From NCBI RefSeq assembly GCF_023055435.1, contig NW_025963779.1, positions 16,430,001-16,494,000 on the forward strand: a DNA stretch of 64,000 nucleotides. The letters are read 5' to 3'. The notes under the pieces are model-generated. The model saw only the letters and a program-made list of their open reading frames with translations. It searched no databases and was not told the origin of the DNA. This DNA comes from Haliotis rufescens. Lineage: Eukaryota. The translations under genes and the position numbers were made by a program. Every line of letters begins with the position of its first letter. Position 1 is the stretch's first letter. Below are positions 1-54,624 of the stretch, in pieces.

Positions 1-1448
1 AGGCTTGCTCATTCCAAAGTGGTTGTCACCTCGGTGACCTCCAAATCCATATATTCTTCCGACTTTGGTTCCAGTTTCACGCAGATGAAGACGAAGACCA
101 CGGCGACAGGTCTTCAAGACAGGTCTTCTCCTGTGTCCGTGCATTCTTGGACATGGGTGTTTGTGAAATCTGTTAAGGCCTTGGAGGTATCGCAAGCGAC
201 GCACGCGTCTTATAGTACGTCGACGATGAATTCTAAACGTAGGTCCTCTTCTGTGGCTTCTGCACATTTTGCCTCTCTGCATGTCACAGCCCGCTTCATT
301 GCATTTTGGCATCACTTCATTAATTTGACCACGCACTCAATACTTTTGGTTATTTCCGAGGTACATAGAAAGGGACTTCCTGGGAAACCTGTCGAATTCA
401 AAATTTGAAGCTTCATCTTCCGAGGTTTCCCTGTTGTCTCTTCCCTCCATCGTCCTCGACTGGCGACGTCGAATGTGGGGTCCGAATACTCTCTGCCATT
501 TGTTTCCATGCGTGGCTCTGTCATTGCTGTTCTTATCGTGTGACTCTGACACATCATCGCTTAATCTCACGCGACGGTTAGGACAACTCTAATATCTATG
601 GAGATTCTTTACATCACGTTTGTTAAGACATCATCCCTCATTCGAACGCTAACATCCAGGCATGTTTCCCGAGACATTCGTGCAACGTACACGACGACGC
701 TGACAGCTGGCAAAGCTGTTATCAGCGCAGTGGCTCTTGGTGTAATGTTCATCTTCAGTCTTATTATCTCGCCTGGACCATCCTCCAAAACAAGGCTCAT
801 TTGTACGACGCCACCTTTTCCCACTGACCGCATGGTGGCCCATGGTGCGTCTACCTGGTCCCTCTTGACCAGCTCGATCACTACAGGATGCTTGAAATCC
901 TCTGCAGCCAGCAAGGAAGGATTTCCTGGCTCCATGACATCCATAATACCAGAGAGGCATAGTGACACCTTCAGTACCCCTGGCGTATCTTGAAGCCCGG
1001 CCTGCTTGAATTGATCACAAATGTGGGTTCAAACAGAGATCGTCTTGTGAGGAATTACTACACTGATGCTCGAGACCTGTCATCATCCGCCTTCTCCAAG
1101 GTCTTCCACATTTCCTGGTAGTCTCATCACGCTTGAAGCGACCATCTTTTTGTATCACCCGTCTTCTCCAACGTTGCCCACAGGAATTCGAAGGAGACGT
1201 ACCATCACTGACATTCTCCTTCTGCAGGCAGTGACGTTCAACTTGCATCACTCGCCTTCCCCTACGTCCCCTACAATCGCTACCTGGAGACGTACAATCG
1301 CTTTCAGCCCCATCACGCTGACAGAGCCCGCCCAGTTCTCTCAGGCGTCGCGTCCCACAGACTCTCGTTGGGGTCACATGCTCCGTAGCTGTATCTTCAT
1401 CAGCTGTAGGGTTTGACCTGTGCCGACGACGACGATGACGCCAGCCGG
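1..1448 (-). pseudogene. Disabled paralogous copy of the large Arg-rich terminal exon of the minus-strand PB1 gene; runs off the left edge of the window
   Basis: Colinear, high-identity match to about 14369-15819. ORF pieces 1015..1581, 649..960 and 337..570 share one frame but end at stops (1015-1017 TGA, 649-651 TAG, 337-339 TGA) where the intact copy has sense codons. Homology ends abruptly at CCAGCCGG (1448), with no upstream exons. Confidence 0.8.
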
Positions 1449-2160
1449 GCATGATGATTGACACATTGTACAAAAACACGCCAACCCCGCCAGAGCCGCG
1501 CTTAGCTAATTTGTTAATACTTTTTCTGATGTTACCAAACCACTTGTAGTTATCTAAATGAAGTACATTATTCCCACGCAAGAAAGTTTCACATATACTA
1601 GTATATAGCTGTATTTTGTTATATTTTTACGAAAATTACTATTTTCGTGATCTAAAAGGTACCACTACAACACTAACGTAGCTTGTTTCAATTTTTGCCA
1701 ATCTGTCTTCAAACTGTATTAAGTTTGATTTAAATTCTGATCTAATATTGTCCATTTCAACCTCAACCGTGCTACTGATTAAGGAAGCAGTCTTCTCTGA
1801 CAATGATATTTCTAATCGCCTCTCTAAGCTGTCCATCCGATGGACGAAAGACTGATTCAAACTCGCGATCTCGGATTTCACAGTGTCAAACATGCGACGC
1901 ATTAAATCGAGAAGTTCGTCATCTCTTCTCACCTTTTATGTGAATCATTGAAACCTTGTTCTGTGAGAGGTCTCTTTCTTGAGTGTCCATCACAGGATCA
2001 CATCGTGCTAAGGGAGACGACTTGTGTTGTCTGGGCGGGTCACATTTTGAATCTCCGCCATTACGTTCTTCACGAAAGATTGACTTTCGTTCATCTCCAG
2101 GGCCACGTGGCAGAGCCGATCGTGCAGGAAAGGAGAACAAAACGTTGTGTGAGCCTTAAG
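1449..2160 (-). mobile_element. Decayed LINE fragment (ORF1-like coiled coil plus start of an APE-type endonuclease)
   Basis: Minus strand about 1449-1595 reads ETFLRGNNVLHLDNYKWFGNIRKS...RGSGGVGVFL, resembling the LINE endonuclease ETWL...RGGGV motifs. ORF 1639..1932 is a heptad-rich coiled coil typical of LINE ORF1. Confidence 0.6.
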
Positions 2161-13889: not shown

Positions 13890-16800
13890 TTACAAATAGG
13901 CCATTCTCAACACCCTATCGCCACCGTGGGTACAGGTGCTTGCCTTGCCTCCCCACGCCTTCATCACAGGTCTTTTTGACCACTGTCCTTGTCCACAGCG
14001 GCTGGCAAATAGCTGTCTTATGCGGAACTGCCTTTTTCTTTCCTTCTGAAGGATTCTTCTCATCAGACACAGTCTCTTCATTTCATGGAAAGTGAGCTTA
14101 AAAGGGGTGTGTGTCCCAACATCTTCAGGGCCGTCACAGGCGTGCTTCATCTGACAGGTCAATCCCTCTTCATCCTTTCCAGAGAAGATGTGCACCCGTC
14201 TGCCAAACCCTCCAGGACAAGCCATTTGACGACCCCAGGATCTGCCCATGACGCAACGAATACTCTTCCTCTCATTATTTCTGCAGCTTGTTCTATTCTC
14301 ACCCATGTTAAATTTGTCAGGGTTTGAAGCATAACATGATGTAACTTGACGGTTGATTGTCTCTCTCAGATGCTGGCCCATTCCAATGTGGTAGGCACCT
14401 CTTTTACCTCCAAATCCATATATTCTTCCAACTTTAGGTCCAGTTCCACGCAGATGAAGACGAAGACCACGGCGGCAGGTCTTCAAGACAGGTCTTCTTC
14501 TGTGTCCGTGCATTCTTGGACATGGGTGTTTATGAAATCTGTTAAGGCCTTGAAGGTATCGCAAGCGACGCATGCGTCTTACAGTACGAAGACGATGAAT
14601 TCTGAACGTAGGTCCTCTTCTATGGCTCCTGCACATTTTGCCTCTCTGCATGTCACAGCCCGCTTCATTGCAATTTGGTATCACTTCATTAATTTGACGA
14701 CGCATCCCATGCCTTCGGTTATTTCCGAGGTATATTGAAAGGGTCTTCCTGGGAAACCTGTTGAACTCCCAGTTTGAAGCTTCATCTTCCGTGGTTTCCC
14801 TGTTGGCTCTTCCCTCCATCGTCCTCCACTGGCGACGTATGCATCGTCTGATGTGGGGTCCGAATGCTCTCTGCCATTTGTTTCTATGCGTTGTTTCCAC
14901 TCTGTCATTGGTGTTCTTATCGAGTGACTCTGACACATCATTGCTAAACCTCACGCGACGTTTAGGACAACTCTCAATTCTATGGAGATTCTTTACGTCA
15001 CGTTTGTTCAGACATCTTCCCTCATTCGAACGCTTACATCCAGGCATGTTTCCCGAGACACTCGTGCAACGAACACGACGACGCTGACAGCTGGCAAAGC
15101 TGTTATCAGCGCAGTGGCTATTGGTGTAATGTTCATCTTCAGTTTTATCATCTCGCCTGGACCATCTTCCAAAACAAGGCTCATTTGTACGACGCCACCT
15201 TTTCCCACTGACCTCATGGTGGCCCATGGTGCGTCTACCTGGTCCGTCTTGACCAGCGCGATCACTACAGGATGCTTGAAATCCTCTGCAGCCAACAGGG
15301 AAGGATTTCCTGGCTCCATGACATCCATAATACCAGAGAGGCATAGTGACACTTTCAGTACCCCTGGCGTATCTTGAAGCCCGGCCTGCTTGCATTGATC
15401 TCCAATGTGGGTTCAAACAGAGATCGTCTTCTTTGGTATCACTACACTGATGCTCGAGTCCTGTCGTCATCCGCCTTATCCAAGGTCTTCCACATTTCCT
15501 GGTAGTCTCATCACGCTGGAGGCGACCATCTTTTTGTATCACCCGCCTTCTCCAACGTTGCCCACAGGAATTCGAAGGAGACGTACCATCATTAACATTC
15601 TCCTTCTGCGGGCAGGGACGTTCTTCTTGCATCACCCGCCTTCTCCATCGTGCCCCCGGAGACGTACTATCACTTTCAGCCCCATCACGCTGACAGAGCC
15701 CGCCCAGTTCTCTCTGGCGTCGCGTCCCCCAGACTTTCGTTGGGGTCACCTGCTCCGTAGCTGTATCTTCATCGGCTGTAGGGTTTGACATGTGCTGACG
15801 TCGACGATGACGCCAGCCGGTCACAGTGCAAGCTTCAGCACCGTTGTGCCCACAAGATGCTTGCAACTGCCATCGGCGACCATTTCTACAGAACTCTCGT
15901 CTGGATCCGCCTGCATCTGAAATACATAACATGTGACTGACTGTACAACTGAAGTCAGGAAAACAAGATGGCAGCTTACTTGAACAGGTCAATCTGGAAA
16001 ACATGTATTATCCAATTTCAGACTTCAGAAATCATGTTTTTCTGCCTGGTAAGTTGACCACCGTTTTATCATCAGTAATATTAAATGCCATCGAAAATGA
16101 CGTAGTTCAGCCATCATACATTTCTATTTTGAAAATACACGTCAATATAAAACGCCACATGACCAATCCGACAACAGAACTCGTTTACAACTCCTTTCGT
16201 CAATTTACAATGATTGCTTATCTAACAATTCTTTTACAATAATTGCCTATCAAACAATTCATTTTACAATAATTGCCTATCTAACAATTCATTTTACAAT
16301 AATTGCCTGTCTAACAATTCTTTTACAATAGTTGCCTATCAAACAATTCATTTGACAATAATTACCTATCTAACAATTTATTTTACAATAATTGCCTATC
16401 AAACAGTTCGTTTTACAATAATTGCCTATCAAACAATTAATTTTACAATAATTGCCTATCAAACAATTCATTTTACAATAATTGCCTATCAAGCAATTCA
16501 TTTTACAATAATTGCCTATTAAACAATTCATTTTACAATAATTGCCTATCAAACAATTTTTTTTACAATAATTGCCTATCAAACAATTCATTTTACAATA
16601 ATGTATAAACTTGGGAGATGACTTACTGCTGTAGTTTCCCCTGACTTGTCCATCAGCAAGGGATGTCATGGCATCGACGTCGCCATCATCTTCCCGTCCC
16701 TGTTGTGGGATCTTCCTGGCCATTCTCATCAGACGTCTGAAGTGACGGGGTTGAACGTCCTTCTACAAGAAGAACGACGTCTAGGGTTAATTTTAATAAT

Positions 16801-18034
16801 AACTCTGTATGACATTTAGGGTTAATTTAGTACTGACATACAAGTATATGAACAGAACGAGAAAGATCTATAAAATGTTCAGACCTGTTGATGTCAAAGG
16901 ATTAATAGTTGAGCTTATTCAGCCAAGAAAACGTTTTTCTAAAATGGTATATGGTCATTAACTACAAAAGAAATATCTGAACTTACCGTCTCCATCATTC
17001 TGTGTCCTCCAGCGTCTGCTCCTTTATCAAAAACACGAGATCTGCGCCAAGTATTAGCGTCAAGGGAAGTAACTCCTTCGGCTCTGTTTGTCACGTCGTG
17101 CTCTGTCAGGCACAGAAACAAAGTCTCAATACAGGGACACTATTCAGGTCACACTGTGTACACACGTTTTCGGTATGTGGCCCTGTGCAGACGGGCTAGT
17201 TCGTTTTGCCGCTCGCATAATCTACGCATTTATCTTATTCACCGTAAAAGCTCAGAGGCCATATCGCACCCCGACATCATTTCATAGTTACTTGAACATA
17301 TCAAATTCTTTTTAAAGAACAATTTACATTGAACAGTAAAACGGATATTCCTCAGAAGCTAGTAATTGAACACACTAGGCAATATATAAATCTATTTTGT
17401 ACTCTTTATGTTAATTGGAAATTATCTCACCTCTGACGGCGATTTTCATAACGGAATCATTGGCACTGCTAAGAGCTTCTTTGAGCTCTTCCTCTGAGGA
17501 GAAAGTTATTGAATCTCCATCTTCATCTGTTAAGAAAAAACAACCAGTATGTTTTAAAGCATGTACTACTGTCTGTCTGTCTGTTTTATTTTTCAATTCA
17601 TGTGTAAGAAAATATTTGCATGTTTTCATGGCGATGATAACAAAGCGGTTCACAACGTTTTTTTTAAACATTAAGTAGAAAATAAGCCAATATATATTAA
17701 CATATGTCAGTAATGACACGACGAAATACATCCAACCAATGACCAATTGGACATACGTTAAAAAGGTATATATTTTACGAATTATTCCTTAAAGTAGTTA
17801 TTTTTCGCACTTAGTCCAACGACCTCGTTGTATATTCATGTAGTAATAAGGGAAAAGTATACCTGTCCAGCACAGTTTGAATGTGTCCGCATCAAGGTGT
17901 GGAAACACTTGCATCACCTTCTCGTTGATGAAGGTGTAACTAAGGGCGGCGTTATCGGGAACAGGGAAACGTCGGACCTCAGGAGTCGCGTTGCCCTGTG
18001 GCTCATAAATCATCTTTATCACCAAGGATTGCAT
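13890..18034 (-). CDS. SQSTM1/p62-like PB1-domain protein with a very long Arg-rich tail; no ZZ or UBA seen; 5 exons, about 848 aa
   Basis: Exons 18034-17863 (MQSLVIK...PEVRRF...KLCWT), 17526-17431 (DEDGDSITFSSEEELKEAL), 17102-16987, 16762-16627 (KDVQPRHFRRLMRM) and 15916-13890 (2-kb open frame). Introns are GT-AG with phases 1,1,0,1. The PB1 Lys7, EVRRF and acidic OPCA motif match p62. Confidence 0.8.
16186..16601. repeat. 30-bp minisatellite (TTTTACAATAATTGCCTATCAAACAATTCA), about 14 copies, in intron 4 of the minus PB1 gene
   Basis: Direct tandem periodicity. It accounts for the NYCKMNCLIG repeat in ORF 16370..16729. Confidence 0.95.
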
Positions 18035-18235
18035 CTTGGGATTTCTCTGGACAGGAAATGTCGTACAGCAGTGGGAGAACTGAAGGATTCTCACGTGTAG
18101 CAATCTGTATTCGCTATTTAGACCGGTCTTATTTCTTTAGCAGACGACAATTGAGTCTTTGTTCAGCAGCTGCCGTAGTAACTTCAGTATAGCTGTATAG
18201 AGCGTGCCGGCGGAGTGATTTTGTCAGTAAAACTA

Positions 18236-18850
18236 GGGGTTTATATACCAGAAAATGAGTGATGTCAATTACTATTAATAGAATCAAACCGTTCTGAAAC
18301 GTTCTCGTGACCGGTTTAGGGCCGTCTCAAACTATTTCGGACCGGTTGCGTGAGAATCACGGGACCCGGGTCGATTGACAAAGTCACGTGACGTGTGAGC
18401 TCCGTTCCGAATGGTTCTTGGGCCGGACCAGTTCACATTCCTTGGCTCGGAGCCAACACTCAACTTAAATCTACATGAAGTTATATACACAGCTAAAGCA
18501 ACATACATGAACGTTCATTAAATGCAAACGTTTGAAATAATGCTTGTGCGTCAACAGATTGATTAACACGCCTTTAACTGTCTCGGGTTAGGTTTTAATT
18601 GATATTTATAACAAGGCAGTTGTACATCACAACCGGTTGATTTACTTGACACTCAGCCAAGATTGTGACGTCACGTGCACTGTCGTTTTTGATGCGTAGG
18701 TGTCGCGGAAAGTACTATCCACGTGACCATGACTCATCGACGCTCGTGATCCTGATGCAACCGGTCTGAAACGTGCCAGCTCCGTTCTCGGAACGTTTTC
18801 GAACGTTCGATTCTATTTCCAGAAATTACAACATACATCGGGTATAAAAG
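18236..18850. promoter_or_regulatory. Shared divergent promoter region with mirrored TATA, HSE-like and E-box modules
   Basis: TATA on the minus strand at about 18240-18247 and TATAAAAG on the plus strand at 18843-18850. HSE-like GAAcgTTTtcGAAcgTTC at 18791-18808, with a mirror copy at about 18281-18304. GTCACGTGAC at 18383-18392. TGACGTCA overlapping CACGTG at 18666-18677. CACGTGAC plus TGACTCA at 18720-18736. AACCGGTT at 18631-18638. Confidence 0.7.
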
Positions 18851-19017
18851 CCCGGGTTTGGGTTTGCTGACAGAATCAAGCGACTCTACCGCTACCTGCT
18901 GACGTGAAATCAAGACAAAAAGAAGCCTATAGAAGTTCTATCGTCTGCTGAAAAGATATTCCACATTCAAACAACTGTTGAAACTTATCGTCACTGAGAA
19001 TCAGCCCGAACAACACG

Positions 19018-22000
19018 ATGCAGTCTGTGGTTGTCAAAGTGTTTTATGAGCGCGAGGGGAGAGGAAGACCCGAGGTCCGGCGTTTCCCTGGTCCCAAGGA
19101 CGCCGCCCCTACACACACCTTCGTCCACGACAAGGTGACCCAGGTGTTCAAACAACTAGAGGCGGGGACATTCAACATGTACTGGAAAGGTGAGTTTTTC
19201 TTTTTATTTGAAAGTATTTGTGTTAATCGTGTTCATAATAACAACATCTATGATTATAATGAACAGTATAGAGTTACTGATGGATTCAGGGTTAGAATAT
19301 AACCTTAGGCAGCGTATGCTGGTCGTAAGAGGCAACTGAATGAATCGGGTGGTCGGGATCGGCGACTTCACTGATTGATTGTTATCATACCCCGACGGCG
19401 TAGAGCATTGCTCACAATAGTGATCACTGGTTGTCTGGTCCAAACTCGATGATGTACAGGCCGCCGCCATAGCTGGAGTATTGCTGAGTGCGGCGTTAGA
19501 TATCAAACAGTCACTGAACATGAATGTATTTATGAAGTATATCAGGGTTGGTTTCACTGTATTTCATTGAGTCTACACTGAACCATAATGCTTTGGGACG
19601 ACTCATTGCGTTGTGAAACAACATTCACTCACATATTCAGTATAATGTTCAAAGCGATTGTTATTCCTGTATCCTAATGATACCTTTAAAAGGTCAACTT
19701 GGATCTTTGCGTGTCATGTACCCCTACGGAGTGGGGTGTTCATGATATCAATCACTTGTTAGTCTTGTCCAGACCCGATTTTTCACCGAAACCTTCATGT
19801 ATCGGCAATATTCAATTTGTTTCTACTGCGCCGTTAAACATTACTCACGCACCCTCTGTACCTTTCAAATAGACTTAAAGTCATGTATTGATACTAAATA
19901 GTTCAAACATTCTCTTTTCATAGTGTATATAATTTTAAAAACATTTAATCGATATTTCATCAATAATTAGCGTAATGAAAATGGGTTTGAAAATATTGGC
20001 GTAAATTATTCTGCCCAGGACTATCTATTAAATGACGTAGATATACATGTTGGACGTATATGACAAAGCCCCGTTCATCCGCACGGTTCCATTCCTTGTA
20101 GTATCACAATTGTCGGATTAACATGTCATTGAAGTTACATCCTTTGAATATGTGTACACGTAATCCCCGATCTTCCGGAATACGGTTTTCCAGACTAACG
20201 GGGTTTCACTGTATAAAGCGTCAGACAATGTCAAAGTTAATATCATTTCTGGATAGTCAGTCAGCCGTCAGATTTTAATTCTATTTTTAACCATCTCACT
20301 TGTCTTTCGAGTTCGCGACAGTTGTCGCAGCATGTGTGTGTAGTTTCTGTTGCTTATTCGTACTCAAAGTTCACGTTCATTATAAACACGTAAGCTAACA
20401 TAAGCGAGCTATTGTTTCAGATGGTGAAGGCGACTTTGTGACGTGCTCCACGGAACAGGAGATGGACGAGGCCCTCTCTTCCGTCAAGGATTCCGTCCTC
20501 AGAATCTACATCCGAGGTACAAACGAACATTTTCTGTTCAATATAAATATAATACACAGTCGTGATTTACTGCTGATGGCAATCGCAGCCTGGGATACAT
20601 TCAAATTATCTTGATATATTGATATTTATGATCAATACAATCAACAGACTCGCTTGGATAGAGCGTACAAATGAATAACGTTGTGTATGTAGAGATTGTA
20701 TCGGGGCTTCAGTAGCTCTTTATTCAGTTCTACGTGCCCCAGCTTAAACGTTGACCAGATATTTCTTTTTACTTTGATACTGTTGACGACTGTGGTGATT
20801 GTGTGATTGTTGTTGTTGATGATGATAATGATCATGATGGGCATTAGTAGTCCTTTGCAGAATGAGTCAGATGTATATTTTAAGATTCAAGTACTGCCAT
20901 ATCAAACTAATCTTTTGATGAATGATCTTTTTGCCAGATGTCTCTCCTGCCGTATCCGAGGAGGATGAATGGGACTTTGACCGGAGGATGCAGGGGTGGG
21001 GCCGAGGGTGGGGCAGGATTGGTGGCAAGCGAGGTGCAGGCAGAATGGTGAGTTGCTAGTAATCATGACTAATTAAAAAGATAGCTCGAATACCTCTCGA
21101 AAAAAACCCTCGAAGTATCATTTTGACCGAAGTCACCGTACCATCTTCTCGTGTACCTTTATTTATTCAATATGCGCTCTTCTCATGGTATTTGATCAAT
21201 TTACACATTATTTTGTAGCCAATGGAAGGAATGGCCCCTCCTCACTTTCTCCGATGGATGAAGCGCATGAAACGCTGGAAGAAGAAGAATCAGTGCCATG
21301 AGTTAAGGACTGAAGGGGAGGCCACTCCCGGTGAAGAGTCCGACAAAACAGCAGATGGTGGCGCCCAAGCGGAAACTACGAACGATGCACCTGAGGTCAC
21401 AGAGGGCACATCTGATAGTAATGGTAGGTATCCTATCACACTCTCTTACAACAACATACAATCACTAATGTCCACTTTACACAAACAAGTTGATCCATGT
21501 GTGTCTGTGGTCCGTCTCCTACAGTTGGAGGGACAAGGTAGACCGAGTGTGAAGTGATTGAGTGTGGGTTTTTTGCCACTTTGGTAAAGACAGTTATGTC
21601 ACTACACCATAGCAAGAGACACCAACATGGGTGTTGGTCATTTTGCCCATTTAGTACCCTGTTCTTTGACATGGCGAGCAGTTGCTTTAACCAGTAGGCT
21701 ATCCCACTGCCTATTCCCTGTTTGGATATAACCGAGGTTGGCGAGATGATCGTGCACGTGTCCCCTGCATGGGTCTTAGTACCATTGTCCGACGTCCGTT
21801 CACAGTAATGTTGACGGTCAGGCAAATTAGTTCATCAGTGCTACATGGTCGTGGTCCAGTGAGCCATGTCTTCAAAAAAATCGTTTCATTTAGTACTGAC
21901 TAAAGGTTTTGTGTTACTCCCAATGGGTAGCGGCGGAGTAGGCTTGTGGGTTCAGGTACAGCATTCGCCCGTCAAGCCAAGTCCCAGATTCAGTTCCCAA

Positions 22001-22718
22001 CATGGGTCAAATGTCCAAAGCCCATTTCTGGTGTCACCCTCGTGATATTGCGTAAATCCATATACATGATGGTTGTGTCTTCTACCTTGGCCAGTATTGT
22101 TTGACCGTGTTCTTGTACTTGTATTTGACAGATACAGAAATGAAGGCAGATGGCCAAAGAGGAGCGAGAAAGTGTGGCAAAGGAAAGAAGGGAAGCCGAA
22201 AATGTCATAATCACGATCAACACCATGTTGAAGACCCCCAGACCAAAGAGGATGGAATCTTCGGATCCTCGGATGAGGACATGCCTCCGCCATTTCTCGG
22301 CCACCCTGGTATGTTTGCAGGTGGCCCAATGCAGTTCTGGGGCATGATGGGAACGCATCCTTATGCCTGGGGTGAAGGTTGTTGGAAACGAAGAGGATGG
22401 GGGAGACGTGGTGGTCGTGGTGGTCGTGGAGGCTGCAAGAGGAGGGGGGAACACTTCAGTGAGACGGAACCTTGGAACGACATGGGTTTTGCCGGATGGG
22501 AAGATGGACGAGGTGACCCAAGAGAGGGCGACAGAGGTCGATTCAGGGGTCACCCTCGAGGTGAAGGTCATGGTCAGGCACAGTGTCCTCGCAGACGCTG
22601 CCGCCGTCACAATGAGGCTGATGAGCCAATGGAAGCCTGCATAGAAGAAATGCGCAACGTCAAGGCCACTGACGACGTCATCACGCTTGATGTTGGGGAC
22701 GAGGCGCCCAAGATGTAG
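19018..22718 (+). CDS. SQSTM1/p62-like PB1-domain protein with an RGG/Gly-Arg-rich tail; no ZZ or UBA seen; 5 exons, about 389 aa
   Basis: Exons 19018-19189, 20421-20516, 20938-21047, 21219-21423 and 22132-22718. Introns are GT-AG with phases 1,1,0,1. The first two exons have the same lengths (172 and 96 nt) as in the minus-strand paralog. Motifs MQSVVVK..PEVRRF and YWK/DGEGDFVTCSTEQEMDEAL. AATAAA at 23122. Confidence 0.85.
19285..19510 (+). mobile_element. Family D SINE-like repeat, diverged
   Basis: GTCGTAAGAGGCAACT...GCTGGAGTATTGCTGAGTGCGGCGTT matches the other family D copies. Confidence 0.7.
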
Positions 22719-23814
22719 ACAGCTGAAGCTTGAAAGAGACGGACATGTGCAGCATATCATTTGGTTGCAATTTGAATATCTAAGACCCTGTCATGAAGAA
22801 CTATGTTTATAATTCCTTCAATCAGACACGGACTACGAAAAGTCCATAGTTCAATATATTTTGTACAGGACATAGCTTATATTAAAATATTGATTCTGAT
22901 GAATTTATCAGTGGTGCATAACAAAGTATTCTCATTATGTGTTGCTTGAACGTAAATGTACATATGACCATGACTTTGATGTTGTCGCTATGGCAACTGT
23001 ACTGCAATATACTTTTTGTAAATACAACATTCATGGTTTCATTCAGTATTGTGTCATATATGTGCTTTTACTGATACTGTTATTTTGTTTGTTATTTGAA
23101 TTAATTTTTTTCCAAGAGATGAATAAAATGTGTATATTGTAAAACATATACATTATTTTGTACTTGTTCACCACACACATGGAGAGTTCATGCTGTAACA
23201 GTCCACGTAGAAATGGACTGATGGTGGTGGATTGTCTGACGTCTTAGAAACATATCAAACTTATGTTCTCAGTAAATGCAGAGTTACGCTACAGATCACA
23301 TTCTAATGTCCCCTAAAGCTCATACAAAGGAATCACATAAAACATATATATATATTAAACAGGGCATTATATTTTAAACAGGGCATACCATACATACCTC
23401 ATGGACGCACACAGTCCACATTAATGACATGACATGCAAGTCGAGCATATGAGTGGGTGAGTGACTACGTATGGTTTATCAAAGCTTAAACAATATCACA
23501 TCACATCATTTATTTCTCAAAAAAGAACCACCCACGGTGGTACAGGAGAAAAAAGTTAAACATGATAATAATTCATATTAAACAAGATGTTGGTTATACT
23601 GTACAAATATTTGGAGATAAACGTTTTGCTTGAACATTTGTACGAACATTTAAACAGAAACCCTAACATAAGCAAACACATATACACAGTTACACTCAAA
23701 GGTACCTCTATGCTGTCTGTAAAAGGAACGTATCTACAACTAACACATGTACATCATCAATGCTGCAAGGTGTCGTGTACACTGTACGGTTCTCTATCAC
23801 CTGTGAATACAGGC

Positions 23815-30445: not shown

Positions 30446-32348
30446 GGAGTATCGGATACTCTAAGTTGCACATCCGGGTGCTTCATGTATGATCCACGTA
30501 CCAAATAATAACAGGACTGTAGCCCAATTCAGTTGGACAGTTTCTATTAGCTTTTTCACAGTCTTCACAATATTCTCGGCCAAATAATGAATGAGTCATA
30601 CATTAGGATATTTTCAGTTCCTTAATGGCATGCCACGAAAAATAAGTCACGGGATCACGTCAATTATGGAAGTAGCTTTAAAAACTTAATGGGTGTGTGC
30701 ATAATCTTTCATGGGTCCGTTATTCTTGACACAATGACTTTGTGTGTTAAACTTTAACATGAAGTACCTGCATAAGAACAATGTAAAATATAATATAAAT
30801 CTAAATTGGGAGAATGATGCTTTAAAACGCTATGCTTTACGATCTATATAAATACAATACATGCCATCTGCTTTCTCTAAGTATATTTTTTTTAAATATT
30901 TAAAAAACAGCAATTCATAATTGTTGTCACTTCATCGCGTCCATTCATTAAAAATGAATCGATCACTTCTGTTAAAAACATCAGCAGTAAAGTTGTGTGA
31001 TTCATGAAGATTAGTGACTGTTTAAAGTCGAAACTTATCTTAGTGTTGTTCATTGAGGCCAGCGACAACCCCGGCTACGAGAAGTCATCGCAGGATAGTC
31101 ATAAGACCCCACAGAGCCATTTTCGTGAGTATTTGGAATCTATTACACTGGACTTGAAGAAATGTGGACCGTTACTTACTTGTACATGCCAAACTGATTG
31201 TTGTATATGGCATTTACAAGCCTAAACGTGTATTTACACATATTTATGTAGATATACATTATATATATTTTGTTCAAAATGAACAACCTTGTTAATTTAA
31301 AAGGTAATACTAGGATATCTAGAGAATTGTGTGACGATAAAAGAAAAGTGAGTTATACACATGCTGCTGCATAGCATCATTATATTTTCACGTGACTGTT
31401 TTTAATATAAAATATTTTGAATATGCTATGTCTGATATCGTGACATTATGACAATATGCACAGTTTTAAATGTACACCGTACAATGCATGGCTTATTGTA
31501 CCATTTTGACAACACTGGTAGTATTTGATGATAAAACATATTGTTATCAGACGGATGATTATGCTTAACAATATTCTTGAAATTTAGAGTGTACAATAAG
31601 GAGTTACAGTGTTACAATAATGTTACGGTGTTGTAATTGTCGTGGATGGGAGTCCTTCAAATCCAATGCGAAAATGAACACGTTCAGTGGGAAGTGAAGG
31701 TGAACTGCCTCACAAACACAATCGGCATCCTATTTGCCCAGACCAGTACAGGAAACTGAGCTCAGGAGGTTGTGATACTGATTGGAAGGTTCTGGTTGAT
31801 TTAATAGAATAGTTTCCAAAATAAAGATGGATTATAATCAGTTATGCTTCTGTAAATATAAGCGACAAACCTCATTTCGTCATCATAAGAAATCTCTAGA
31901 GTCCATTCTACGACTATAAATGTATAAATCAGCATGTGTTTATCAACCACTGCCTAACAGTGATGATACCAGGTGTTCGCGAAAAGGGCAGCCTATCTTG
32001 GTGGTACATTTGCTGGACCACGCAATATACCTCTCATTATACCTCCTCTTGAAAAGAATCCATAAATCCCTGATAATTGAACATATGTTTTCTTATCTTG
32101 GAAGTTCAAATAATCCAAAAAGAAATTACAATGTATAAAGTGCTTGGTGAAATAGCCTATTACCTTTCTATAGGGATGTCCAAGCAAGAGAAGCATTCTA
32201 GTTATCACAACAAGTGTCTAGATAAGTGGGTTTCGACTGTACATACTAAAAGTAGTTTTGCACTGATCAACACAAACCATTAGTCTAAACATTTTCACAT
32301 TACGTACGGCAGCAAAACATTCCTTGTTTGTAATTTCAGACTGTGAAA

Positions 32349-33578
32349 ATGGGATTGATGGGTTTTCGGTTCTTGTTGGCAATGCTAACAACAGCTGCAG
32401 TTGCTGACGCATATCAACCAAAAGGGAAGGGTTATAGCATTCCACGGGTTCACCCAAAGGGATCACATCCAGTTCACCCGAAAGGAAATTTCGTCGCACC
32501 CGATACTCCCAACGTGAAAGAGCCTTTACTTCCTCAACTTCCACTGTATTTAAACCCAAAGGGTTCATTTCTCCATGACCACAGACGTTTAAGACCTGTA
32601 AATCCTAAAGGAGCTATTTTACCTTCAAGACCCTACTTTCCACGTTACAACCTGCGAGGATCCTACCTTCCTGCCCGCCCTAAAGGTCAGCTGGAACCAC
32701 ACACTTCAATAGGATTACATCGACCCTTAAATCCTAAAGGTTCACTAGCTCAGCCGACACAACCCTTGCATCCAAAAGGTACCCTAGACATGCCGAAATG
32801 GAAACAAACTTCATCGACACAGACGAAAAAGTCCTCCTCTGCAGAATACAAAGAAGAAACTTGGACCAAAAAGAAAGACACAAATACTGTTTACCCCAAT
32901 TATCCCTCTGACCCATCGGCCAACAAGCCAACCGTTTCTCCTGCGGACAAGAAGAAGCAAACGCACCCTTCCAACCAACACAATCCATGGGTCAATAGCA
33001 AAACTAACCCCACTAAATCCAATCAACAAACAAATGAACCTGCTGGACAAGTGAAGGATCTTAATAGCCAAGATCAACGTCAAAACCCATCTGTAGACCC
33101 GACTAACCATGGTCAACAAGGAAACAGTATTGATACAATTGGACAAAACTCAAACAACCAAGACCAAGGTCTGCCGCCAAGTCAACCTGGAAGTTGGCAA
33201 CATACAAACCCATCCACCAATGACCACATCCCTCGTGACACGTGGCAAGTGGTAGACCCATCAACTCAAGGCCAAAATCCATCTGACCCTTGGCAGACTC
33301 AAGGTCAGCCTCAAAATCCATCTGACCCTTGGCAGACACAAGTTCAGCCTCAAAATCCATCTGACCCTTGGCAGACACAAAACCAACCTGACACGTGGCA
33401 AGTGGTAGACCCAACAACCCATGGCCATAATCCATCTGACCCTTGGCAGACACAAAGCCAACCTGACACATGGCAAGGGGTAGACCCATCAACCCATGGT
33501 CAACCTCAAAATCCATCTGACCCTTGGTCACCAAGTGGTCGCCAACAGACCGAAATACACAATGCAATAGCTGGTTAA
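32349..33578 (+). CDS. Secreted Pro/Gln-rich repeat protein, paralog 1 (8 PKG motifs, 5 NPSDPW repeats), 409 aa
   Basis: Acceptor TTTCAG ends at 32339 and the first ATG is at 32349 (the ORF track start at 32343 is GTG). Signal peptide MGLMGFRFLLAMLTTAAVADA. A conserved paralog starts at 47222. AATAAA near 34007. Confidence 0.85.
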   Translation: MGLMGFRFLLAMLTTAAVADAYQPKGKGYSIPRVHPKGSHPVHPKGNFVAPDTPNVKEPLLPQLPLYLNPKGSFLHDHRRLRPVNPKGAILPSRPYFPRYNLRGSYLPARPKGQLEPHTSIGLHRPLNPKGSLAQPTQPLHPKGTLDMPKWKQTSSTQTKKSSSAEYKEETWTKKKDTNTVYPNYPSDPSANKPTVSPADKKKQTHPSNQHNPWVNSKTNPTKSNQQTNEPAGQVKDLNSQDQRQNPSVDPTNHGQQGNSIDTIGQNSNNQDQGLPPSQPGSWQHTNPSTNDHIPRDTWQVVDPSTQGQNPSDPWQTQGQPQNPSDPWQTQVQPQNPSDPWQTQNQPDTWQVVDPTTHGHNPSDPWQTQSQPDTWQGVDPSTHGQPQNPSDPWSPSGRQQTEIHNAIAG

Positions 33579-46620: not shown

Positions 46621-47221
46621 TATACCTAAAGCTTATAATAATAGTTAAACGTCTTGGCGAAATTCCCTTGTTTTCATTTTGCCTTTACAGAAATTCCGAT
46701 TTTTATGCATAAGAAAAGGTCCTGAACTGTTTTGACATAATTGAAAATGGTTCTTTTCTGTGATTGCAGATTCAAGCAGATCCTTTGATGTTCTTAGAAT
46801 CCACATGGTATTGCTTGCACTTGTCTCAAACATTTTCTCTGAATATATAAAAAAAACTTCCTTTTTGTATTCGTCACTTACTGTTGACTCCTTGAGACAG
46901 GTACATTTCCTGGACCAAACAATATCCCTCTCATTATACCTTGAAAATAATCCATAAATCCATGATAATTTAACATATGTTGGATTTTGACATAATCCAA
47001 AAAGAAATTTCAATTTATTAACTGCTTGGCTAAAGAGACTACTACTTCTGTCCTAGCAAGTGTAGTATTCTAGTTAGCATATTAATTGTCCGGATAAGCG
47101 AGGTTCGACTGTAGATACTAAAAGTAGTTTTACTCTGATCAACCACAAGCCATTAGTCTATAAATTTTAACATTACGTACGGCAGCAAACCATTCTTTGT
47201 TTGTAATTTCAGTTCGTGAAA

Positions 47222-48247
47222 ATGGGATTGATGGGTTTTCGATTATTGTTGGCAATGCTAACAACAGCTGCAGTTGCTGACGCATATCAACCAAAAGGAA
47301 AGGGTTATAGCATTCTACGGGTTCACCCAAAGGGATCACTTCCAGTTCACCCAAAGGGAGATATCGTCGCAATTAACAATACTCGTCACTTGGAGAAGCC
47401 CTTACTTCCTCAGCTTCCACTGCATTTAAACCCAAAGGGTTCATTTCTCCATGGTCACAGACGTTTAACACCTGTCAACCCAACAGGAGCTATATTACCT
47501 TCAAGACCTTACTCACCACGTTACAATCTGCGAGGGTCCTACCCGCCTGTGCGTCCTAAAGGTCAGCTAGAACCAAACACCCCACTAGGATTACATCAAC
47601 CTTTGTACCCTAATGGTCCCCGAGCTCTGCCAACTCAACATTTGCATCCTAAAAGTACCCCAGCCCAGCCGCTTCAAGATACCCGAGACATGTCGATATT
47701 GAAACAAACCTCATCGACACAGATGAAAACTGCCTACTCTACAGAAAACAAAAACAAAACTTGGAATAAAAAGAAAGAAACAAATATTGTTTACCCCAAT
47801 TATCCTTCTGACCCATCGGCAAACAAATCAACCGTTTCTCCTTGGGACCAGAAGAAGCAAACGCACCCGTCCAACCAACACAATCCATTGGTCAATAGCC
47901 AAAATATCCCCACAGCGCCAAATCAACAAACAAATCCGTCTGAACCTGCTGGACAAGTGAAGGATCTTAATAGCCAAGATCAACGTCAAAGCCGTTATGT
48001 ACAACGTGTTAATCTGAATAACCATGGCCAACAAGGAAACCGTATTGTTCCCCGGCTTGCGGTTGGACAAAACCCAAACTATCAAGACCAAGGTGTGCCT
48101 CCAAGTCGACCTGGAGGTTGGCAATTGACAAACCCTTCCACCTATGACCAGTTCCCTTCTGACACGTGGCAAGTGGTGGAGCCATCACCTCAAGGCCAAA
48201 ATCCATCTGACCCTTGGTTATCAAGCCCAAAACACGCAATCCAATAG
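47222..48247 (+). CDS. Secreted Pro/Gln-rich repeat protein, paralog 2 (5 PKG motifs, 1 NPSDPW), 341 aa
   Basis: Acceptor TTTCAG ends at 47212 and ATG is at 47222. The signal peptide is nearly identical to paralog 1. The ORF is intact. AATAAA near 48665. Confidence 0.85.
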   Translation: MGLMGFRLLLAMLTTAAVADAYQPKGKGYSILRVHPKGSLPVHPKGDIVAINNTRHLEKPLLPQLPLHLNPKGSFLHGHRRLTPVNPTGAILPSRPYSPRYNLRGSYPPVRPKGQLEPNTPLGLHQPLYPNGPRALPTQHLHPKSTPAQPLQDTRDMSILKQTSSTQMKTAYSTENKNKTWNKKKETNIVYPNYPSDPSANKSTVSPWDQKKQTHPSNQHNPLVNSQNIPTAPNQQTNPSEPAGQVKDLNSQDQRQSRYVQRVNLNNHGQQGNRIVPRLAVGQNPNYQDQGVPPSRPGGWQLTNPSTYDQFPSDTWQVVEPSPQGQNPSDPWLSSPKHAIQ

Positions 48248-50904: not shown

Positions 50905-52122
50905 GTAAGTAATTAGTAAAACTAACTTGAAATAATGCCGAAAAACATGTCTACGTAACTGTTTTCCTTTGACATTGACAGCGACATCAATGAATTACCT
51001 GTAGAAAGTGTGGAAATTTGTCAAAAGGGTTTATTAACTTATATTTCTTTTCAATTGTTATCTGATACATTTATGAGCTTACGAGCTGTAAATTGATGAC
51101 TAAAGAATTCGACAGGTTAATGGCTTGTTCTGAAAGCTGATTGAAATGTGTATTTCACATTTCAAAGTTTTAAAGACTTGCCTCAATAAGATTCATACGA
51201 TGAATAAAGTTACCATGAATTATTAAACATTTCCAAATTTACAATTTTCTGAAAAACATAACAGTAAGACAATTTTCATTTTAATACTTGAAGATAACGC
51301 CTGATTGATATAGGGTAGGGGAATACAGGTTTGTAAGTATATATTTACATCATGACATTGAAGTACAATGTAGGTTTGAAAACAAGAAATATACTTGATG
51401 TAATCGTATTATTTGTGTATGTCATTATTTATATTCAAAATATATCTTACTGCACTTAGGTCTCGTTTCTTGACAGTATTGTATATTAAATGATTGGTTA
51501 GATATGCTTCAGAACTATTTGAAAGTATGGATGAAATTACATATTATAGTCCTCTCCATTTGACAAAGAACACGAAATAACGCGATTATTGAACAAGTCA
51601 TTCCGGCTCTCAGGAAGACTTACTTACAGAAATGACAAATCTTGGACAGTGCGCTTTTCAAGTTATATCCATTTTGCTGGTAATAAACATCATCATACAA
51701 TTTTGATCACGTGGGTACAATCCGAGTACGGTCACGTTTTTCCTATAATTCGTGCTAGTACGTACAACGCGAATGTATGTGTGTGCGTGCGTATTTTTGC
51801 CTTTGCTTATGTTGTATTTGCGTAAGATGTAAATTATGTAGTAAACGTGTTATCACATTTCAGAAATGCTGATGCACCTTCTCAACATTTAAAACTGCCT
51901 AATTTATATCCAACGAAGTATAGAGTCCATCCCAGTTTAGAGGATGTTGGGGTGACTGGATAGGGTTGTTTCAGAAGACTGTGTTGCATTATCTTTCTTC
52001 GTTTTTTAAATTAATTGTTCACACCATTCCAAAACAACCGATATTGGTGCCAAATTCAGATGTATTTAAAATAGCTTTCCAAATTTATATCGAATTTGTA
52101 CATTTCTTTAATTTCAGCCGAG

Positions 52123-54624
52123 ATGAGCAGAATGGTAAACCGTTTCCTCGTTCTTGCAGTACTGGTTTCGAGTGCCTGTGCAACACGAATCGTTAGTCTG
52201 CCTAAAGGAGTCTTATTTCGGACTGGGACAACTGGAAATGGTAGAATGATGGCATTACCCACCGTAGGACCAATACATCAAGACCACCTAGCTCCAATTC
52301 AAAGAGCTGGAGACACTGTTCCTTCTACTCCGACTGGATCAATGATGGTATCACCAAGCAGAGAATCACGTGTGGTGAGGACAGGAGGTCCAGGGGCAGT
52401 TTCTTCCATTCCCTCCCAGTCTCCTTTACCAACATATTCTACTGGCGCCATTCAACCAATGACCGCAGTACCTTCCACAATGAGTTTCTCTCAGTTATTT
52501 GCTTCTCAACATACTGCCACCAGACCGTCTTTCTTTCATCAAGCTGCAAGTGGTTCATTTCAACCAAGACTATTTCAGCCTCCTGTAACAGGTCCGTATC
52601 AACCACCTGCCTTCCCACCACCTGTAACCGCTTCGTTTCATCCAACATTCTTTCAACCATCAGTATCTGGTTCGATTCAACCAGCGGCCTTCAAACAACC
52701 TGCGTCCGGTTCTTTTCAACCAGATTTTTTTCCATTTGTATTTGGTTCCTTTCAACCAACCATCTACCAACCAGCAGTACCTGGCTTATTGCAACTAGCT
52801 ACTCAACCAACTGGGACTGGCTTGTTTCAACCATTTACTGAACCAAATACAACCCCAAACATGTTTCAGCCTGTGACTCCGGCACTAACCTTAAGTGGAT
52901 CGTTACCTCAAACCAGTATTTGGCCCTGGAATCCTGCACCAAATCTACCTCTATCACCTGTCACTGGAATCGAGTTTCCGAAACAAACGCTTCTGACGAG
53001 CCTTAATCCACGCACTGGACGACTAGATATGACCCAACAACTCGGCCTATTCCCGCAACCGATCAAGATGGATCAGTTTCAACTGCAACATCCATATGTC
53101 CTGCTGCAACCAATGAACTCAGTACAAAATATTCAGACCAAGTTAACAAATCCTACCAAACAGCTAATCCTACCTGAACCTAGTTTTCCCCTAACCACAG
53201 CTGATCTATTTGAACCGAAAACCCCATCTGATTCAACACTGACAGTAGTCAATGCAACAGCACTTACCCCTTCTAACCCTGTACACCCTTCTTTAACTAA
53301 CCCATTTCAACCTGACACTGTATTAATCAATTCGTTGCAAACACAGACCCAACTTGGTCAAGTGCAACCAATTAACCCAAACGACAAAGGTCATACAAGA
53401 CTAGCATCTGACCCCAGGCCGACAATGAACACACCAAATCCTAGTAAACCGCAGGCCCCACTTGACAGTGTAATGCCCTCCCCGACAGAAAGTCAGTTTC
53501 AGCCAGCAAACCCGCCTTACCAAGGCTTTACGACGGTCAAAGAAGGCAAATTGCAATCCCAAACTACAAATGGCCAAAGAGGAACTGTTCAACCAAAAAC
53601 TACACTTGACGCTAATGTGCAATGGACGCCATTCGACCCAGTGTACGCACAAACCAAATCAGATTCTTTGCCACCAATAAGTCAGGATCATATCTCATCT
53701 GATCCATTATTGTCACACAACGCTATAGACCTTAGTCATCCACCAAGCCCATCTCTCAAGGGGAAACCTATAATGCAAGAAAACAAAATTCCGTTGCCAC
53801 ACTATAAGGAAAGTATGACTACCGTGGACAGTTTGATACATCAGATCACGTTAAATCAAATTGAGCCATTACATCCTCAATTACATTCTGACCCATTATT
53901 ACATCTAACTAAGGCTGCCCCAAGTCAAATACAAGAGGCATCAGGGCGGCCGCAGCCTAGTTCTTCAAAAGAAGGTCAGTCGCAAATCATTTCTGACTCC
54001 AGACAGATGTTGACTACAAATCAGCTGCAACCACAAAACCCTTTTGATAGTTTGTCTGGCATGTCCATAGCGGACCCAAGTCTACCACAAAGTCCATCTG
54101 ATTCAATCATGTCCATACCCCCATTAAATCAACTTCAACGGCTAGACCCATCTGACCCCTGGTTGACTATCACATATGAAGCACAAAACCCAGCAAAACG
54201 CAAGCAACAGCTCAATTATTTGGACCCTACGCTCCCTGTGACCAATTTAGAACCACTAAAGCCTATTATCACATCTGACCCTGGACCACTAGCAACCATG
54301 GCAGGATCACACCAGCCATCAAACACGTCTGACACGTCTTCATCTATGAACTCAATCAACCAAGCTCTTACGCAAATCGCATCTGAACCTGGACCAAATA
54401 TGACTACGTCGAACACACAAGATCCCCTTTCACCTGTGCCAGACTTGACCATAACATATCCGAGCCAAGTACAAAACCCGTCAGCACCTACGAACTCGAA
54501 CAATCCACAAATCCCCGGTGACTGGCTAACTGCACTTAATAGACGAACACCACAATATTGGATCAATCAAATACCAACTACACACTCTAATGCTCCACAA
54601 GGAATCCAGAGCGGCCCTGTATAG
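52123..54624 (+). CDS. Secreted Pro/Gln/Thr/Ser-rich (mucin- or matrix-like) protein, 833 aa
   Basis: Acceptor TTTCAG ends at 52117 and ATG is at 52123. Signal peptide MSRMVNRFLVLAVLVSSACA. The open frame is 2.5 kb, with 13-aa GSFQP repeats and SDP motifs. AATAAA at 55045. Confidence 0.88.
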   Translation: MSRMVNRFLVLAVLVSSACATRIVSLPKGVLFRTGTTGNGRMMALPTVGPIHQDHLAPIQRAGDTVPSTPTGSMMVSPSRESRVVRTGGPGAVSSIPSQSPLPTYSTGAIQPMTAVPSTMSFSQLFASQHTATRPSFFHQAASGSFQPRLFQPPVTGPYQPPAFPPPVTASFHPTFFQPSVSGSIQPAAFKQPASGSFQPDFFPFVFGSFQPTIYQPAVPGLLQLATQPTGTGLFQPFTEPNTTPNMFQPVTPALTLSGSLPQTSIWPWNPAPNLPLSPVTGIEFPKQTLLTSLNPRTGRLDMTQQLGLFPQPIKMDQFQLQHPYVLLQPMNSVQNIQTKLTNPTKQLILPEPSFPLTTADLFEPKTPSDSTLTVVNATALTPSNPVHPSLTNPFQPDTVLINSLQTQTQLGQVQPINPNDKGHTRLASDPRPTMNTPNPSKPQAPLDSVMPSPTESQFQPANPPYQGFTTVKEGKLQSQTTNGQRGTVQPKTTLDANVQWTPFDPVYAQTKSDSLPPISQDHISSDPLLSHNAIDLSHPPSPSLKGKPIMQENKIPLPHYKESMTTVDSLIHQITLNQIEPLHPQLHSDPLLHLTKAAPSQIQEASGRPQPSSSKEGQSQIISDSRQMLTTNQLQPQNPFDSLSGMSIADPSLPQSPSDSIMSIPPLNQLQRLDPSDPWLTITYEAQNPAKRKQQLNYLDPTLPVTNLEPLKPIITSDPGPLATMAGSHQPSNTSDTSSSMNSINQALTQIASEPGPNMTTSNTQDPLSPVPDLTITYPSQVQNPSAPTNSNNPQIPGDWLTALNRRTPQYWINQIPTTHSNAPQGIQSGPV

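Follow-up and report, generated by a model that had tools for sequence, protein, structure and literature searches.

Within a 64,000-nucleotide stretch of the Haliotis rufescens genome (contig NW_025963779.1, positions 16,430,001 to 16,494,000; hereafter the window), positions 13890-22718 carry two divergent genes whose products both begin with a PB1 domain like that of SQSTM1/p62. This gene pair very probably represents a Haliotis-restricted family derived from SQSTM1. Taken as a whole, the explanation that we favor, and consider somewhat likely to be correct, is that the two genes encode p62-derived PB1 scaffolds equipped with new tails. The gene on the reverse strand (termed the long gene) encodes a protein of 848 amino acids, and the gene on the forward strand (the short gene) encodes one of 389 amino acids.

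Gene models were assembled from splice-site context and from translation of the open reading frames (ORFs) in frame. Every intron has GT-AG borders, both models are free of stop codons on translation, and the intron phases are 1,1,0,1 in the long and the short gene alike (Table 1). A first-pass annotation of the same DNA had described two divergent five-exon genes with identical phases and with first and second exons of 172 and 96 nt, and the gene models agree with it in each of these respects. All of the residues and motifs that it had listed are likewise present, namely Lys7 of the PB1 domain, the sequence EVRRF that contains R21 and R22, an acidic DEDGD or DGEGD, and the basic PRHFRRLMRM or PPHFLRWMKRM. 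It had also considered the terminal exons (675 versus 195 amino acids) to be unalignable, and alignment of the two complete proteins is indeed confined to PB1, with 52% identity.

At every residue, the short model agrees with RefSeq XP_046377252.2 (LOC124149601 isoform X1), which carries the name 'uncharacterized protein'. Isoform X2 of this locus begins at M72 in RefSeq and would therefore be a tail-only product without the PB1 faces. Exon 1 of the long gene encodes a sequence with 100% identity to residues 1-57 of the H. cracherodii ortholog. Furthermore, a paralogue of the long gene that resides 37 kb upstream, LOC124149577, has RefSeq exon lengths of 172, 96, 116, 136 and 1928 nt, which is the same layout as that of the long gene in the window. 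We estimate that an open frame of 705 codons far exceeds what chance would produce. The pair had been put forward as undescribed, and our literature search found no paper that mentions either locus (LOC124149601 or LOC124149577), but the genes already reside in RefSeq as uncharacterized proteins.

The relationship of the pair to SQSTM1 is established by shared introns, a collinear alignment, matches in structural databases and a phylogenetic tree, which together identify the family as an SQSTM1 offshoot. The searches were conducted with single exons, with XP_046377252.2 for the short gene, and with the H. cracherodii ortholog or the paralogue LOC124149577 for the long gene. The joined long-protein sequence was used in local scripts only (translation, composition, trees and the ratio of nonsynonymous to synonymous substitution rates, dN/dS or omega). 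On contig C583, the genome of H. rufescens carries three canonical loci of SQSTM1, which encode PB1, ZZ and p62-type UBA domains. In the two canonical loci that were checked, the first four introns match those of both window genes in codon position and in phase (1,1,0,1). Canonical exon 3 holds the ZZ domain and ends in GRM, and exon 4 opens with a PPHFRRWMKR-type motif. A collinear alignment of the short protein with a canonical sequestosome-1-like protein from Haliotis pairs PB1 and the exon-4 motif and leaves ZZ in a gap (BLASTP E 8e-30).

Comparisons with known structures point to the same origin. A phmmer search of the PDB returned SQSTM1 PB1 domains as its nine best matches (best E 4.6e-6), and other PB1 proteins were clearly weaker (MEK5, E 0.02; NBR1, E about 1). 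The top ten Foldseek matches are all p62 PB1, with template modelling (TM) scores by target of 0.69-0.84. In a PB1 phylogeny that includes canonical SQSTM1 (support given as ultrafast bootstrap / SH-like approximate likelihood ratio test), the derived clade receives 100/97, and its grouping with Haliotis SQSTM1 copies A and C has a support of 82/84. Within the clade, support is 100/99 for the long lineage and likewise for the short lineage, and orthologs from H. rubra and H. asinina occur in both. Judged by these sequences, the two lineages had formed before the sampled Haliotis species separated.

A profile made from five long-family proteins was also searched against 1.84 billion representative proteins. 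One cluster only, from Haliotis, spans the tail, and one cluster represents the short family; the remaining listed matches cover PB1 only. Most of the PB1-only matches that were looked up (15 of 19) are named sequestosome-1, sequestosome-1-like or ref(2)P and come from molluscs and echinoderms; the nearest PB1 relatives all bear one of the first two names. Eight of these proteins were scanned with Pfam, and all carry ZZ, UBA_5 or both (both in six of the eight). The terminal exon of the long gene matched only Haliotis proteins, each an 'uncharacterized protein' carrying PF00564. Intact orthologs of both lineages are present in H. cracherodii, H. rubra and H. asinina, so that the family is seen in four Haliotis species; exon, protein and profile searches did not find it outside this genus. 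The SQSTM1 origin and the lineage-specific character that the first-pass annotation had proposed are therefore both upheld, the former by the alignment, introns, PDB and fold matches and tree, and the latter by the confinement of the family to Haliotis. The three canonical loci themselves lie at C583 6931001-6941000, 6917001-6927000 and 32481001-32491000, two of them in tandem, and the copy at 6917001-6927000 has a long Pro/His-rich repeat insertion before its UBA domain.

The modules that accompany PB1 in canonical SQSTM1 are missing from the pair. No Pfam match to ZZ (PF00569) occurs in the short protein, in five long-family proteins or in the window exons, whereas the canonical relatives all match. 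On this sequence comparison, ZZ is lost in both genes through a deletion inside exon 3. The p62-type UBA domain (PF16577, UBA_5) has no match in either family, and a genome-wide scan places UBA_5 only at the three canonical loci. These results sustain the earlier view that ZZ and UBA are absent, in that Pfam finds PB1 only. The canonical copies carry an LC3-interacting region (LIR) with the sequence GEWTLL or GWTLL. A regex scan reveals no LIR-like motif in either protein of the pair, although atypical LIRs are beyond the reach of a pattern scan. Residues 312-317 of the short protein, in the exon-5 tail, read MGF followed by GW, which resembles the MGF..GGW loop of the p62 UBA domain. This match is not significant (BLAST E 24), Pfam sees no UBA there, and the string could be a vestige or a product of chance.

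In contrast, the PB1 domain is retained in both proteins. The short protein scores 25.7 bits against PF00564 (cut-off 23.6), and long-family proteins score 40.6-45.9 bits. Single exons of the window are sub-threshold for this family because the domain is split across two exons; exon 2 of the long gene alone gives a PB1 E value of 7.4e-5. Filament formation by p62 requires the type-B lysine K7, the double arginine finger R21/R22, and the acidic OPCA residues D69, D71, D73 and E82 (PMC6978347). In alignments of orthologs, K7, R21, R22, D58, D62 and E71 are invariant in both lineages, and the last three of these correspond to D69, D73 and E82 of p62 in the PDB phmmer alignment. The position of p62 D71 stays acidic, with D60 invariant in the long lineage and E60 in the short lineage. 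By this measure of sequence, both genes keep the residue set of the polymerizing type-AB PB1 domain of p62. A polymerizing PB1 with both faces had been claimed at first sight, and at the residue level the claim is borne out by the invariance of both faces in the family.

Structure prediction is consistent with this assignment. In AlphaFold2 (AF2) models, residues 1-90 fold as PB1 at a predicted local distance difference test (pLDDT) score of 50-75. The modeled pairing of the long with the short PB1 yielded a complex score of 0.36 (best control 0.01), which lends weak support to such a complex. At least 86% of contacts recur across the three runs, and the partner pLDDT is at least 75. In the calibration of this score, 51 of 78 solved complexes and two of 108 mismatched pairs attained the mark used for the 0.36 test; with scores of 0.60 or less, only five of the 78 solved complexes attained it, as did all four mismatches that passed.

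The properties of the PB1 heads could also fit a role for the pair as regulators of canonical p62, which we consider unlikely. The heads would co-polymerize with SQSTM1 and dilute or cap its filaments with subunits that lack UBA and LIR, thereby lowering the valency for ubiquitin and ATG8, and the tails would be secondary. The conserved PB1 faces, the presence of three canonical SQSTM1 copies in the same genome and the weak score of the modeled complex are in keeping with such a role, as is the observation that other PB1 domains bind p62 filaments (PMC6978347). However, a pure capper would have no need of a 675-amino acid tail, and yet the genus has retained this ORF throughout. The short tail is also better conserved than the linker-bearing middle exons of canonical SQSTM1. 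Moreover, the derived PB1 domains lie on a long branch (0.65) from the canonical PB1 domains in the tree, and may for this reason have become self-specific.

Copies of the two genes were located by a six-frame genome search and by tblastn, and their positions are given in window coordinates, with negative numbers lying before the window start. The whole head-to-head unit is duplicated as a mirror image in this genome, and H. cracherodii likewise has two long and two short genes. Across introns and the intergenic region, the upstream unit differs from the window unit by 4-11%, and the intergenic region itself (18035-19017) is 95.8% identical to that of the upstream pair. The two first exons of the window pair form inverted repeats, as do three further intergenic segments, and these four pairs (I1-I4) share one common axis near 18545. 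This arrangement suggests that the pair arose when a gene was duplicated in inverted orientation along with its promoter. No perfect three-unit heat-shock element occurs in the whole window.

A third copy of the long-tail exon is truncated and lies at the window start. Its DNA is 91.5% identical to the intact one, and its indels are all multiples of three. Its 5′ end has been exchanged for an unrelated sequence through which the frame stays open (ORF 1015-1581), a replacement that we suspect to be a mobile-element insertion. Intron 4 of the long gene measures 710 nt in the window and 918 nt in the upstream paralogue, and contains a 30-bp minisatellite at 16200-16602 (13.5 copies, 90% matches). 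A 256-amino acid antisense ORF (21990-22760, reverse strand) that lies over the last exon of the short gene is most likely a by-product of skewed exon composition.

Table 1. Exons of the head-to-head gene pair and its additional copies, in window coordinates.
Feature	Position	Strand	Description
Long gene exon 1	17863..18034	-	172 nt; start codon, first half of PB1 including K7 and R21/R22
Long gene exon 2	17431..17526	-	96 nt; second half of PB1, acidic OPCA motif DEDGD
Long gene exon 3	16987..17102	-	116 nt; slot and phase of the canonical ZZ exon, without ZZ finger
Long gene exon 4	16627..16762	-	136 nt; basic motif PRHFRRLMRM, homologous to canonical SQSTM1 exon 4
Long gene exon 5	13890..15916	-	2027 nt including stop, 675 aa; Arg/Cys/Trp-rich, net charge +82
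Intergenic region	18035..19017		983 bp between start codons; nested inverted repeats, axis near 18545; presumed bidirectional promoter
Short gene exon 1	19018..19189	+	172 nt; first half of PB1 including K7 and R21/R22
Short gene exon 2	20421..20516	+	96 nt; second half of PB1, OPCA motif DGEGD
Short gene exon 3	20938..21047	+	110 nt; GW/RG-rich remnant of the ZZ exon, ends in GRM like the canonical exon
Short gene exon 4	21219..21423	+	205 nt; basic motif PPHFLRWMKRM, predicted helical, then acidic stretch
Short gene exon 5	22132..22718	+	587 nt including stop, 195 aa; net-neutral tail, predicted disordered, with tri-RGG, GW dipeptides and acidic C-terminus
Upstream short gene	about -24232 to -28040	-	Intact, 393 aa
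Upstream long gene LOC124149577	-23255 to -18994	+	tblastn match up to 100%
Truncated third long-tail exon, pseudogene	1461 to -272 (window part 1..1461)	-	Five in-frame stops; runs about 270 bases past the window start

Omega values were calculated between the window unit and the upstream unit of this genome, for which the substitution counts are small. The long gene gives 0.70 overall, 0.44 in PB1 and 0.76 in the tail, and the short gene gives 0.55 overall, 0.09 in PB1 and 0.68 in the rest. One 135-codon block of the long tail stands at 1.5. When the truncated third copy is compared with the intact long tails, omega is 0.77-0.80. The value for the intact copies is close to that for the pseudogene, and residue-level constraint on the long tail is therefore weak. 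Nevertheless, the intact long tails show no stop in 675 codons, whereas the truncated copy has gained five at similar divergence, and the ORFs are intact in all four Haliotis species.

Orthologs of the long tail are 57-87% identical (57% across the genus), and short tails share 73-80% identity genus-wide. Between the same species, identity is 51-71% for the middle exons of canonical SQSTM1, where the disordered linker is encoded. The notion of an unusually fast-evolving long tail was set aside, since these canonical exons diverge as much. Thus, the long tail does not stand out for its rate of change, and the short tail shows good conservation.

These rates bear on the quite improbable view that the family is an antiviral or conflict-driven offshoot of p62, for which Drosophila ref(2)P and sigma virus reportedly provide a comparison. 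Foreign nucleic acid or proteins would then be the targets of the polycationic tail, with duplication and loss as the means of turnover at the locus. The mirror-image duplication of the unit with its dead third copy, the two long and two short genes of H. cracherodii, and a long-tail omega of 0.7-0.8 with one block at 1.5 would all be expected of such an offshoot. On the other hand, overall omega is below 1, the genus-wide identity of the long tail falls inside the range of the canonical linker exons, and infection-response data were looked for and none were found.

The relaxed omega of the tails (0.68-0.76) and the pseudogene already present at the locus could instead indicate duplicates that have no role of their own or are in decay, and whose annotation simply reflects ORFs that remain open. 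The lack of a protein record for the long gene of the window (see below) would agree with decay. We judge this to be very improbable, as both lineages are intact in H. cracherodii, H. rubra and H. asinina, the splice sites are all intact, the PB1 interface residues are invariant, omega of the short PB1 is only 0.09, and the intact tails are free of the stops that the dead copy has collected.

The terminal exons differ sharply in composition. The 675-residue long tail contains 114 Arg (17%), 34 Cys and 16 Trp residues, has a net charge of +82 and displays no recognized motifs. The 195-residue short tail contains 23 Arg, 7 Cys and 6 Trp residues with a net charge of +1, and includes a tri-RGG run, Gly-flanked Trp residues and an acidic C-terminus. 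The cationic, Arg-rich tails of the first-pass annotation are therefore a property of the long gene only; the term 'polycationic' does not apply to the short gene, whose whole product has a net charge of -3. Outside PB1, both AF2 models stay below a pLDDT of 50, the exceptions being a helix near the C-terminus of the long protein (residues 781-811) and a weakly supported one over the exon-4 motif of the short protein. On the basis of these models, both tails are predicted to be disordered. The long tail has no usable feature match in the ESM Atlas, where its structural rows reach a TM score of 0.25 at most. The idea that it was built from repeats of the exon-4 motif was dropped when comparison of the tail with itself by BLAST showed no internal repeats.

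Short motifs are more evident in the short protein. We defined a tri-RGG box as three RGG units spaced 0-4 residues apart within a disordered region, and the sequence RGGRGGRGG occupies residues 287-295. The run is intact in one of the two H. cracherodii short orthologs, and two units remain in the second H. cracherodii ortholog, in H. rubra and in H. asinina. Among the 11 tryptophans downstream of the short PB1, nine adjoin glycine. A SUMO-interacting motif was taken to require a (V/I)(V/I)x(V/I/L) core with acidic flanks and conservation across orthologs; the short protein carries DDVITLD at its C-terminus, which (as DDIITLD in one copy) is found in four of five short orthologs, and the H. 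asinina protein has DDVNIMG.

The GW and RGG motifs raise the possibility, which we hold to be highly improbable, that small-RNA or RNA-granule machinery uses the short protein as a GW/RGG adaptor. Its Gly-flanked tryptophans would serve as Argonaute hooks, the tri-RGG would bind RNA, and PB1 would provide multivalency. Both features are largely conserved across Haliotis. However, GW and RG runs occur also in the linker of canonical Haliotis SQSTM1, which indicates that they are inherited rather than new, and the shortening of the RGG run in H. rubra and H. asinina likewise speaks against this role.

Very probably, a duplicate of an abalone SQSTM1/p62 gene was copied in inverted orientation together with its promoter, giving rise to the long and short lineages. 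Each gene has kept the p62-type AB PB1 domain (exons 1-2) and the basic helix motif of exon 4, has lost ZZ, shows neither UBA nor a LIR-like motif, and ends in one long terminal exon that encodes a tail predicted to be disordered. From the gene structure, ancestry, domain loss, conserved interface residues and predicted disorder of the pair, we infer a mechanism that is offered tentatively and that we are far from certain is right. If the genes are expressed, their PB1 heads would form front-to-back oligomers or filaments, whether homotypic, of long with short protein, or mixed with canonical SQSTM1. These assemblies would present many copies of the tails (polycationic in the long protein, an RGG/GW-rich polyampholyte in the short protein), and the tails would bind RNA or other polyanions. 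The outcome would be assemblies that resemble those of p62 but have no coupling to ubiquitin and ATG8, and that may condense nucleic acids.

Several observations weigh against p62-derived scaffolds of this kind. A search for a protein record of the window's own long gene found none, although its ORF and splice sites are intact. Moreover, the family members in the protein collection all come from NCBI or UniRef annotation and none from assembled sequencing runs. Support for the PB1-PB1 complex is weak, and its score could stem from solved PB1 complexes that the predictor has learned. The long tail is also weakly constrained, and exhibits neither internal repeats nor known motifs.

A more elaborate form of the proposal, in which the pair constitutes a co-regulated two-component scaffold of abalone, is unlikely in our estimation. 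Polycationic and RGG/GW-rich subunits would co-polymerize by way of their p62-type PB1 heads, either alone or within p62 bodies, and bring RNA or other polyanions, possibly viral, into p62-like condensates without the involvement of ubiquitin or ATG8. If true, this would be a natural separation of the polymerizing function of p62 from its receptor function. The function of p62 combines polymerization through PB1 with the binding of cargo and ATG8 through ZZ, LIR and UBA; the family keeps only the first of these, coupled to new disordered tails, and the head-to-head pair has been maintained across the sampled Haliotis species. If expressed, the pair would thus be a natural experiment on a p62-type polymer freed from ubiquitin and autophagy; if unexpressed or redundant, it would be an ordinary lineage-specific duplicate family. 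The family also shows a receptor gene rebuilt via inverted duplication and then domain loss. For studies of stress, disease and aquaculture in abalone, this genome offers four unstudied relatives of a key stress gene.

The window holds further ORFs outside the pair. Two paralogous single-exon ORFs on the forward strand (32343-33578 and 47216-48247; 411 and 343 amino acids) have an apparent signal peptide and PKG-spaced and NPSDPWQTQ-type repeats, and look like secreted low-complexity proteins. Secreted repeat proteins may also be encoded by two further forward-strand ORFs, one of 842 amino acids (52096-54624) that is rich in Pro, Gln, Ser and Thr and has a hydrophobic N-terminus, and one of 373 amino acids (62020-63141) with basic repeats of about 33 amino acids (…NPRRRQS.PSQP…GIQRKTKS…).

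Among known systems, the closest to the pair is SQSTM1/p62, represented by ref(2)P in Drosophila, by the three canonical copies in this genome and by the sequestosome-1-like proteins of Haliotis. The likeness includes the type-AB PB1 domain with K7, R21/R22 and the OPCA acids, the first four intron positions with phases 1,1,0,1, the PPHF-RRWMKR-type motif of exon 4, and a Gly/Trp/Arg-rich disordered linker. Unlike SQSTM1/p62, the pair has ZZ deleted in exon 3 and has neither a LIR-like motif nor a UBA exon. A block of the canonical linker (…NVGE.VAA…PFGIDV…) is absent, and the terminal exon of 195 or 675 amino acids is new. By this comparison, neither protein can act as a ubiquitin-to-ATG8 receptor of the canonical type.

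NBR1, MEK5, PKC iota/zeta, Par6 and TFG share with the pair the PB1 beta-grasp fold and its electrostatic front-to-back pairing, but rank below p62 by sequence and fold and are unrelated to the pair outside PB1. TFG consists of a PB1 domain followed by a long disordered region. Proteins with RGG boxes of the FUS/hnRNP type are Arg-rich, disordered and RNA-binding. The three RGG units in a row of the short tail, the 17% Arg of the long tail and the predicted disorder of both invite comparison with these proteins; however, the pair has no RNA recognition motif (RRM) or other RNA-binding fold and no sequence homology to them, and RNA binding by its tails would be an analogy. Finally, human p62-H2 is a splice or start variant that lacks part of PB1 and keeps ZZ, LIR and UBA (PMC8227998). 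Like isoform X2 of LOC124149601, this variant is without the PB1 faces; the abalone isoform would be a tail-only product, whereas p62-H2 retains the receptor modules.

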